From assembly GCA_054661495.1 (NCBI GenBank), contig BAAFSQ010000108.1:1-30111 (forward strand): a DNA stretch of 30,111 nt. The letters are read 5' to 3'. The notes beneath the pieces were generated by a model. That model searched no databases and was not told the DNA's origin. It saw only the letters and a program-made list of their open reading frames with translations. A program made the translations under genes and the position numbers. Shown piece by piece: positions 12,626-16,103 of the stretch. How positions within the stretch are numbered: position 1 is the stretch's first letter; every line of letters begins with the position of its first letter. The DNA comes from Zygophlyctis sp. KS116. Taxonomy: Eukaryota; Fungi; Chytridiomycota.

Positions 12626-15600
12626 ATGGTGAGTAGACCTGAATCATGGTCCAACATTGTTTTTGTTCTTGGAGGTCCTGGATCAGGAAAAGGGACACAA
12701 TGCATTAGGATCTCAAAAGAATTCAATTACTTTCACTTGTCTGCAGGTGATCTCCTGCGTGCTGAAGTCCATACTGGATCTGATCTTGGGAAACGAATTG
12801 ATGCAATGATTAAGGAGGGGAAAATAGTTCCAATGGTAAAATCCGATATTGACTTATATGATAGAATATTACAATCTCACTTCTAAAGGCAGCCATGGAA
12901 ACTGCACCTGCTGATGCTGCAGGATTTCTAATTGATGGGTTCCCCAGACAGCTTGATCAGGCATTAGAGTTTGAGAAAGATATTGCCAAATGCAAATTTG
13001 TTTTGTACTATGAATGCGGTGAAGCTGAATTAGAGAAAAGACTGTTAAAACGAGGAGAGACGAGTGGCAGAAGTGATGATAATATAGAGAGCATAAAGAA
13101 AAGATTCAAAACATTTATTGAAACAAGCTTTCCAGTTATTGAACATTTCAAAGATCAGGATAAGTGTCATACTGTAAGACTTTTAGTAAGTAATTTTAGA
13201 TCTCTTCTGAGCGGCCGGTAGAGGAAGTGTTTGAGGAGACAAAGAAATATTTTGTAAAGCCTCCCCTTATTTATCACAATAATATTGTGTTTGTACTTGG
13301 AGGGCCGGGCTCTGGAAAAGGCACACAATGCACCAAGCTGGTAGAAGAGTTTAAGCTAAAGCATCTGTCGACAGGTGATCTATTACGTGCAGAGGTAGAG
13401 AAACGATCAGCCGTAGGAGAGAAAGCAGCAGCTCTAATGAAGGAGGGGAAGATGGTACCAACCGCACTGGTAATTGGGCTTTTACGGAAGGCCATTGAAG
13501 AAAACATCGAGTCTGAAGGCTTTTTGATTGATGGATATCCTCGAGCAATGGATCAAGCCGAAGAATTTGAAAACACAATCGGACCTTGCAGGCTGGCTCT
13601 TTTCTTCAATTGCCCATTGGAAACTTTGGAAACCAGGCTTTTGGAAAGAGGGAAGACTAGCGGGAGAGCCGATGACAATATTGATACTATAAAAAAGAGA
13701 TTCCAAACTTTTCAGGAGCAAAGCTTGCCTGTTATTGATTTTTTTCACGAAGTTGGTAAATGTGTGACTATTAGCAGTGAATTTTCAAAAGAAATGGTTT
13801 ATTCTGAAGCGAGAAAATATTTTGTGAAGTCAAATTTGATTTATCACCCTAATATTGTTTTAGTTACTGGTAATGCTGGTTCTGGAAAAAGCGAATATTG
13901 CCTGGATTTCTCAAGAAATCATGATTATGACTTATTAAGAGTGGATGATCTTTTACAGAAAAATGAACGCACTTTGGCACTCATCAAGCCTGATGCATAT
14001 GGAATGCAGAAAAAGGATAGTATTGTTTCACGAATTACAGATCAAGGATTTAAAATTGTAGAGCAAAAAGAAATACTACTTTCGGAAGATGTGGCACGGT
14101 CATTTTATGGAGAGCACTTTGGAAAACATTTTTATGAAAATCTGGTATCATGGATGACTAGTGCTCCGATCTATGCCATGATTCTAGAAAAAGAGAATGC
14201 TATTGCTGATTGGAGGGCTTTGGCGGGTCCTACAAATTCAAATGTAGCTCGAGAGACTTCCCCCAATAGTCTGAGAGCCTTATATGGGACTGATGGAAGT
14301 CAAAATGCGGTACATGGATCAGATTCAGCCCCATCAGCTCGGCGCGAGATATCTCTTCTTTTTGAAGATTTATCCCTTAATGCTGAAGAGAAATTATCTA
14401 GTTGCCAATTGGTAAAAATCTTGCGCGATGAGCTTTTGTGCAAACTGTCTTATTCCAATGGGATGATTATAGGTATTTTAAATCAATTACTCATTTTAGA
14501 TGGATTTCCAAGAACATTTGAGGATATCGAAGAATTTGAAAAGCAAGTAAGAAACACTACATATACTTATTTTTTCAGATTGGACCATTCAGAATGATTG
14601 TATCATTCACATGTAGACCTCTAACAGCACAAAAACGATTAGGATATCTAGATTTTAAGCAGTCTGAAAAGCTGTTGGTTTCGTCTTTCAAATTTGATGA
14701 AAATTGCAGGAAAATGTTTGATAATTATGGTTATGAAGATAAATTCATTCAAATCTCCTGCGATGAAAGCTCCAAAGAAACTATATCAACTCAATTCATG
14801 TCAGTGCTTGAAATCTCTCCAAAGCGTTGCATTCCAAATATTTACTTTGTACTTGGAAAGCCTGGCAGTGGTAATATATGAAGCTATAATTTTTCGTAGG
14901 GAAAGGAACTCAATGTTTTAAGCTTGCATCGGAGTATGGTTTGGTTCATATTTCAAGCGGTGATTTGCTTAGAAAAGAAGTTGCGGCAAATACGGAGATT
15001 GGTAAAGCAACCTCTGAGGTAATTGCAAAGGGATCATTGGTTCCGACGGTAAAGTTGATAATATAATATTTAGAAGTTTATCTTAGGCCTAATTTTAGCT
15101 GAAATGGATCGGCATGAAAATCCCAAAGGATTTTTGATAGGTACAATTATTATTGTTTTAATGATTAGATGGGTTTCCTCTAACGGTCGATCAGGCTCTC
15201 TGTTTCGAAAGGATAGTTGGTCGCCCTAGATTTGCATTATTCTTTGATTGTTCTAGTCTATCACTGAAGTCTCGCCTGGAAAGTCGAAAGGAAAAAAGAT
15301 CTGATGAAGATTACAGTGTCCTCAAACATCGATTAGAAATTTTTAATCAGAAAAGCCTTGCAGTAATTCATTATTTTGAATCAAGATGCATGCTTCTTAG
15401 AATATCAGCTGAACCTAGTGAGCAGCACGTTTTTGGAGTTGCCCAGAAATATTTCCGCCCTTTGCCCTTTTATACTAAGGATATCATTTGTATTATGGGT
15501 TGTCATTCCTCTGGAAAGTCGACTTTGGCAAAAAAATTGTCTCATAATATTGATGGGATTCATATATGTGTTTCAGACTTGATTCAGATGGAAATAGATC

Positions 15601-16103
15601 GTGGATTTCATTTGGCATCGGGCTTGACAAAAGAAATGAAAAGTGGCGATAAAATCAATTTGAATGTCGTTTTGTACTTGGTACAGCGCGCCATGGAGAA
15701 GCAAAATTATTCTCCTGAACAGCCCATTGTTTTGGATGGATTCCCCTTTACATTGGAGCAATTTGAAGTTTTTGAAAGAACAATTGGCCACGTTAAGTTG
15801 ATCATACATCTAGATGCAACAGCAAATATTATATGCAGTAGAAATATAGATGAAGACGAAAAAATATCCAGGAGAAAGCATCTTGTTTACACCAAGGCTG
15901 TAAATTCTCTCGAGCAGTCATTATCCGGAGATCCAAGATATAAAGTCGTTGATGCATCATTACCAATTGAAGAAACTGCTGAAATTTCTACCATGTTATA
16001 CTATAAGTTAGATGTTAAAAATTCATATGAACTAGATGCTGACGATTCCAATTTAATAGCAATTACAACCAATGGCCTTGATAATGAAAATCTTATCAAT
16101 TAA
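12626..16103 (+). CDS. Multi-kinase fusion: 5 AK-fold domains with an NDP-kinase domain inserted in the third (kinase gene B), 8 exons
   Basis: P-loops GGPGSGKG (x2), [24 protein letters not shown]; NDK domain at 13965-14363. Introns 12836-12864, 13174-13199, 14473-14499, 14547-14578, 14871-14899, 15049-15073 and 15141-15168 join into one frame ending at TAA 16103. Confidence 0.85.
12645..13739 (+). repeat. Copy 2 of the 1095-bp direct duplication
   Basis: Starts catggtccaacattg and ends cctgttattgat, exactly as 10105-11199; the flanks diverge abruptly. Confidence 0.95.
13965..14363 (+). other. Nucleoside-diphosphate kinase (NME/NDK) domain within kinase gene B
   Basis: [11 protein letters not shown]...FYGEH...[12 protein letters not shown]...WRALAGPTN...PNSLRALYG...NAVHGSDS...AREISLLF. 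Catalytic His codon at 14313-14315. Confidence 0.95.

Follow-up and report, generated by a model that had tools for sequence, protein, structure and literature searches.

A nucleoside diphosphate kinase domain nested within a degenerate adenylate kinase repeat of a chytrid-like fungus

Can one nucleotide kinase be housed inside the fold of another, and would such nesting let a single polypeptide carry a nucleotide from NMP through NDP to NTP? The question is raised by a gene in a 30,111-nucleotide stretch of DNA from Zygophlyctis sp. KS116 (hereafter, the window). A preliminary description had placed a complete nucleoside diphosphate kinase (NDK) domain within the third of five adenylate kinase (AK) repeats and proposed a single-chain relay. 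The window corresponds to contig C108 in an assembly of 1175 contigs totaling 12.7 Mb, and its DNA is present in freshwater metagenomes; a search of sequencing runs retrieved no RNA run carrying it. Genomic introns of 25-32 nt, chytrid proteins as nearest relatives, and 13 dynein heavy-chain matches over the cut-off make it likely that the host is a flagellated chytrid-like fungus.

Architecture and integrity of the locus

Removal of seven GT-AG introns yields a predicted chain of 1093 amino acids with a single terminal stop. This gene, termed gene 2, comprises the following features.

12626 to 16103, + strand: gene 2 coding sequence, 1093 aa, AKa-AKb-AKc[NDK]-AKd-AKe; open after splicing, with intron positions common to its orthologues
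12836-12864, 13174-13199, 14473-14499, 14547-14578, 14871-14899, 15049-15073 and 15141-15168, + strand: introns of gene 2
12647 to 13844, + strand: AKa and AKb, AK1/UMP-CMP-kinase type, with full P-loop, NMP lobe, GFPR/GYPR and LID arginines; predicted active
13845 to 13961, + strand: N-terminal half of AKc (strand 1, P-loop GxxGxGKS, helix 1, strand 2 and start of the NMP lobe)
13962 to 14363, + strand: group II NDK insertion without introns, residues 428-561 (134 aa); codon of the catalytic His at 14313-14315
14364 to 14830, + strand: C-terminal half of AKc (remaining NMP lobe, DGFPR, degenerate LID without catalytic arginines)
14831 to 15473, + strand: AKd, from parent-gene repeat 3; Arg97 to Leu in all five loci
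15474 to 16007, + strand: AKe, probably from repeat 4; degenerate P-loop, Arg97 to Phe, shortened LID
16056 to 16085, + strand: perhaps what is left of the beginning of a C-terminal peroxiredoxin domain, seen by alignment only and too short for significance

The nested NDK is complete. A Pfam profile search matched PF00334 at 13965-14369 (E 1.7e-43, profile positions 1-132 of 135), and the domain spans 134 residues at 13962-14363. Both of its junctions lie within one open reading frame (13227-14597), which encodes a full ADK domain, then a P-loop fragment, then the NDK. As originally reported, the N-terminal junction is continuous and free of introns: no GT donor was found at the 5' junction, and treatment of the NDK as a skippable intron was rejected on that ground. 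The AK fold does resume after the insert, provided that two tiny introns (14473-14499 and 14547-14578) are removed; both are needed for the resumed motif MIIDGFPR...KQIG and occupy identical positions in four orthologous loci. Elsewhere in the window, a short tandem repeat with an 18-nt unit (18567-18629) lies inside the open reading frame of a coiled-coil-like gene.

Immediately upstream is a second multi-AK gene, the parent, which shares an exact direct repeat with gene 2.

9703 to 12535, + strand: gene 1 (parent), 879 aa, a short N-terminal region and four AK repeats with catalytic motifs kept; seven introns
10105 to 11199, + strand: copy 1 of an exact 1095-bp direct repeat spanning AK1, the greater part of AK2 and two introns
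12645 to 13739, + strand: copy 2 of the repeat, near the start of gene 2

The copies are 100% identical across 1095 bp, introns too. An exact repeat adjoining the feature under study is what an assembly chimera might leave, and among the matches listed there were no same-species independent contigs across the NDK junctions. Nevertheless, a chimera or a decaying pseudogene is almost certainly not the explanation. The repeat unitig has a depth of 200 in sample X2, against 92 and 110 for its neighbors, and in X2 and X3 (possibly the source samples) the NDK and both junctions fall in a single 4887-nt unitig. X6, a contig from an independent study with 8 differences, reads across the beginning of copy 2, and copy 1's end is present in both X4 and X6. 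Misassembly of the repeat was rejected on its roughly doubled depth, the recovery of both junction types in independent studies, and an equal layout in loci L017 (97% identical) and L099 (74%). Open frames, purifying selection, and recurrence of the nesting, with matching intron positions, across five further lineages (ENA, JGI, and Logan assemblies) also speak against an artefact.

We likewise rejected a single long gene of nine AK repeats. The stop codon of gene 1 (12533-12535) is conserved and is not preceded by a donor, every candidate acceptor leads to a stop, and the gene 2 ATG is conserved. This ATG lies ~90 nt beyond the gene 1 stop and 7 codons upstream of the first AK strand; both stop and ATG are kept in L017 and L099.

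The two repeat copies appear to evolve together. In L017, two substitutions relative to the window are common to both copies, and in one sample copy 1 of L099 and copy 2 of L100 are 98.5% identical over 275 nt while being 78% identical to the window. Homogenization within species alongside ~22% divergence between species points to gene conversion, and recurrent conversion between genes 1 and 2 would be the simplest reading. The end of the homogenized tract varies by species, lying ~11 codons further in L015. Assemblies tend to break at repeats, which matches where two of the contigs begin: L014 on the repeat's first base and L015 close to its end. A separate homogenized case is the Chlamydomonas ODA5-associated AK (P0157), whose three AK repeats are near-identical (branch lengths 0.008-0.026).

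Nesting was also found in L014, L015, L100/L101, L102, and P0200 (5' junction only in the last), giving six lineages including the window. These relatives are uncultured lake chytrid lineages. Four nested contigs share 63-79% DNA identity with one another and ~68-70% with the window; intron positions are equal, as is the downstream B9 gene where seen. Three relatives (L100 at 2541-3062, L102, and P0266) carry an intronless C-terminal Prx6-like domain on gene 2, 46-48% identical to the peroxiredoxin on contig C128 and retaining the peroxidatic Cys in one of the three. Gene 2 of the window and of L014 ends before this domain; in the three relatives it is complete, and tblastn on the putative remnant at 16056-16085 returned no match.

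In protein searches limited to the best 150 and best 120 matches, with one tool length-limited, 269 proteins were retrieved. AK and NDK co-occur in 41, end-to-end in 38 and nested in 3, all three of the window's lineage. No annotated chytrid protein among the matches listed was nested, and no named chytrid multi-AK protein contained an NDK. The Boothiomyces multi-AK locus had no neighboring paralogue, and gene calls revealed no second AK gene in the 1.4 kb downstream on an ENA contig with equal Sec5-AK order. A metagenome scan by DNA pattern retrieved only generic NDKs (37-49% identity), and searches of the ESM Atlas by features and by structure retrieved only plain NDK clusters.

The NDK insert and its source

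The canonical catalytic set attributed to the insert is fully present, together with the equivalents of Ser120 and Glu129. The active-site Lys, Tyr, Phe, Arg, Thr, Arg, Asn, His, Ser, and Glu are kept in all five complete inserts, the catalytic His being His545 in the window. In an AlphaFold2 model, the NDK portion exceeded a pLDDT of 90 and matched 3q83 in a structural search (Z 23, rmsd 1.7 A). By the simple NG86 method, in which dS was near saturation for several pairs, dN/dS of the insert was 0.10-0.13 where dS could be estimated, compared with 0.15-0.34 for the AKc halves. Outside the converted segment, no part of gene 2 is more constrained than the insert, which by these ratios is under purifying selection.

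Phylogenetic placement identifies the likely donor. In a quick NDK tree with SH-aLRT but no bootstrap support, the five inserts form one clade (SH-aLRT 96) within a clade of fungal TXNDC3/6 (NME8-like) repeats (96) and are separate from the NDKs carried by protist AK-NDK fusions. The same genome encodes, on the minus strand of contig C5 (L005), a thioredoxin-like gene with three NDK repeats, each with two introns. Its repeat 3 shares 62% identity with the insert and is the only repeat with the catalytic His, which is lost in repeats 1 and 2; both introns of repeat 3 are missing from all inserts. One of these introns has a GC donor. On the tree and the intron pattern, the insert is a copy, lacking introns, of an NDK repeat of the fungal NME8/TXNDC type. 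Gene 2 itself lacks the NME8/TXNDC architecture of an N-terminal thioredoxin followed by several NDK domains, having a single NDK and no thioredoxin.

Whether the insert turns over nucleotides bears on a rather unlikely alternative, in which, like many NME7/8 domains, it would serve mainly as a docking or nucleotide-binding module with little or no turnover; it would take over from the parent's lost N-terminal anchor and tether the two active AK repeats to the axoneme, for example, near outer-arm dynein. Several features fit a docking role: the insert is a group II NDK with a Kpn-loop insertion, present in single copy, and it presumably lacks the group I oligomer features Gly22, Glu29, and the C-terminal arm. 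Gene 2 also lacks the N-terminal region of gene 1; by eye, that region (9703-9900) resembles a Dpy-30/RIIa docking motif, and its second exon alone gave no Pfam match. Measurable activity is often absent from group II NDK domains, with most tested group II proteins inactive, and NME8 is the orthologue of outer-arm IC1 (PMC7024210). However, retention of every active-site residue in all five complete inserts, set against loss of the His in donor-gene repeats 1 and 2, and a dN/dS of ~0.11 argue for catalysis. The Nme5-like protein of Chondrus is also active, although its AK domain may contribute (PMC7024210).

The host repeat and the remaining AK repeats

The two flanks of the insert behave as one AK domain. 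With the insert excised, AKc gives a colinear match to a profile built from 201 AK domains (profile positions 2-168, 55.5 bits). Taken singly, the N-terminal part scores 17.6 bits at positions 2-37 and the C-terminal part 42 bits at 64-170, without overlap. The insert-excised AKc of four orthologues likewise forms one colinear AK domain each (56-76 bits). Insertion occurs after the GDLLR-equivalent motif and replaces ~11 residues of the NMP lobe, and neither the insertion point nor the linker lengths vary by more than 1-2 residues.

Structure prediction, suggested previously as a check, agrees with this assignment for the modeled half of AKc. AlphaFold2 was applied to 13845-14546 (the first half of AKc plus the NDK) using an alignment of nested orthologues and NDK rows without AK rows; the model omits strands 4-5 and the LID and includes a 9-residue read-through of its first intron (mean pLDDT 83, pTM 0.73). 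Over model range 1-226, 72-84 residues of the AKc flanks superpose on NMP kinases, including T4 PNK, uridylate kinase 1ukz, AK4, and maize AK (rmsd 2.3-3.3 A, Z 5.6-7.5). Since the N-terminal flank is just 39 residues long, the aligned length indicates that both predicted flanks superpose together as one unit. The middling Z scores reflect that half the domain was folded, with a C-terminal part at pLDDT 41-80.

Catalysis by AKc is another matter. The functions of the AK residues considered here, such as Thr39, Arg97, Gln101, and the LID arginines, are established; numbering follows human AK1. AKc has lost Thr39, GxLVP, Gln101 (Asp in all five), and LID Arg132, Arg138, and Arg149 in all five loci, and retains the P-loop Lys, Arg97, and usually Arg128. 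From these losses and that of ~11 NMP-lobe residues, AKc looks catalytically dead and should not make NDP. AKa and AKb, by comparison, retain the full catalytic and NMP-binding residue set, with best PDB matches to yeast uridylate kinase (E 7.6e-55) and human AK1 (E 1.8e-51). In all loci covering AKd and AKe, Arg97 is replaced by Leu and Phe, respectively. Judged by residue content, only repeats 1 and 2 of gene 2 look active.

These assignments bear on the proposed NMP to NDP to NTP relay, of which one part stands: both enzyme types are present on one predicted chain. The nested unit itself would not be a relay, given that a dead AKc cannot supply the first step; any coupling would run from repeats 1-2, making the arrangement functionally equal to a tandem fusion. 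True channeling between AK and NDK sites is thus very improbable. It could draw on the presence, in a single chain, of two intact AK/CMPK-type repeats immediately before an intact NDK and on reported and reviewed physical interactions between AK and NDK (PMC2680645). Because the host is dead, however, nesting does not put the NDK especially near any active AK site. Small nucleotides are seldom channeled by proximity alone.

A retained P-loop in a dead kinase might instead suggest a nucleotide sensor, in which ATP/ADP at the P-loop Lys and Arg97 would move the NDK-bearing NMP lobe and switch NDK activity or orientation. The NMP lobe of AK is known to be mobile, and the insertion lies within it; the P-loop Lys-Ser/Thr and DGFPR are kept in all five loci, and the near-constant insertion point and linkers would also fit. 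Yet P-loop conservation is equally expected for folding, the LID arginines that drive closure are gone, pLDDT falls below 50 at junction residues 179-181 of the model, and AKc is the fastest-evolving part of the protein (46-66% identity versus 67-83% for the NDK). We therefore consider a sensor improbable.

Assembly, function, and comparison with known systems

Our favored explanation, held with somewhat better than even confidence, is that gene 2 encodes a lineage-specific pseudo-AK scaffold that co-locates one NDK with two active AK/CMPK-type domains for local nucleotide buffering, probably in the flagellum. Gene 2 would have arisen by tandem duplication of a chytrid multi-AK gene of the AK1/AK5/ODA5-associated-AK type, followed by loss of the parent's N-terminal region and gain of a fifth repeat. 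The AK tree places AKd beside parent repeat 3 (90) and, weakly, AKe beside repeat 4 (78); AKc sits on a long branch among repeats 2/3. Sequence, tree, and model together show that an intronless NDK repeat from a thioredoxin-multi-NDK gene was placed in the NMP-binding lobe of the gained repeat, presumably either as a cDNA-mediated copy or with later intron loss. AKc would still fold as a pseudo-enzyme, mounting the NDK in place of its own NMP lobe. Gene conversion would keep repeats 1-2 identical to those of the parent, and these two repeats would interconvert ATP+NMP and ADP+NDP; the NDK would exchange gamma-phosphates among nearby NTP/NDP pools, most likely in the zoospore flagellum. Coupling would occur through co-localized, freely diffusing nucleotides with no channel, so that the whole chain would work like a tandem AK+NDK fusion.

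Gene 2 has no recognizable targeting domain, and its probable flagellar location is argued from family kinship only. The flagellar context proposed at the outset is nonetheless plausible, given kinship to ODA5-associated AK, an NME8/TXNDC-type donor, and the dynein heavy-chain matches in the genome.

Gene 2 thus offers a clear, datable case of building a new multi-enzyme chain, in which a tandem duplicate was partly homogenized with its parent, its other repeats decayed, and an NDK was captured from another gene of its own genome; in three relatives, a peroxiredoxin was captured in the same way. It suggests that the NMP lobe of an AK can be swapped for a whole 134-aa enzyme, and by itself reveals no new chemistry. 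Were the improbable sensor model true, the protein would be a natural allosteric domain-insertion enzyme tuning GTP/ATP exchange in the zoospore flagellum to local ATP/ADP. The AKc[NDK] unit is small enough for expression and a test of allostery.

Among known systems, Nme5-like proteins of Chondrus and other early-branching eukaryotes carry NDK and ADK on one chain, and the recombinant Chondrus crispus protein has an NDP-kinase activity of 184-273 U/mg that its authors could not assign to one domain (PMC7024210). Gene 2 resembles it in joining AK1/AK5-type domains to a group II NDK with all catalytic residues. The Chondrus protein, however, is an end-to-end NDK, Dpy-30, and ADK fusion with an Nme5-type NDK and one ADK, whereas gene 2 has an NME8-type NDK nested in a dead AK among five repeats and an independent origin. 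Dpy-30 is absent from gene 2, and its domain order and NDK type also differ from those of the Nme5-like fusion.

Protist tandem AK-AK-NDK-NDK and NDK3-AK5 proteins (such as Ectocarpus P0251, MMETSP P0043, and P0027) also combine several AK repeats, some degenerate, with NDK, but none of the 38 end-to-end proteins is nested, and the insert's fungal clade does not include their NDKs. These proteins belong to two widespread end-to-end families: NDK x3 + AK x5 of 1200-1700 aa (P0027, P0041, P0052, P0058, P0061, and P0093) and AK x2 + NDK x2 of ~740 aa (P0043, P0194, and P0251). Our search found no papers on either.

The Chlamydomonas ODA5-associated flagellar AK and the multi-AK proteins of Boothiomyces, Batrachochytrium, Gonapodya, and other chytrids share tandem AK1-type repeats with gene 2 at ~50% identity but have no NDK. 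Fungal thioredoxin + multi-NDK proteins (NME8/TXNDC3/6-like) represent the source clade of the insert (62-67% identity), of which gene 2 holds one intronless repeat without thioredoxin, within an AK. The flagellar chains FAP42 and FAP180 of Chlamydomonas combine AK with guanylate kinase in serial domains (PMC12680740); they too join different nucleotide kinases, with guanylate kinase in place of NDK.

Single-chain AK+NDK proteins are published and common in tandem form. The literature searched, largely papers available without subscription, yielded no description of an AK fold containing an NDK. As far as we found, what appears new is the nested, independently derived form. It would represent at least the third independent joining of AK and NDK in eukaryotes, which suggests repeated selection for co-locating both activities.
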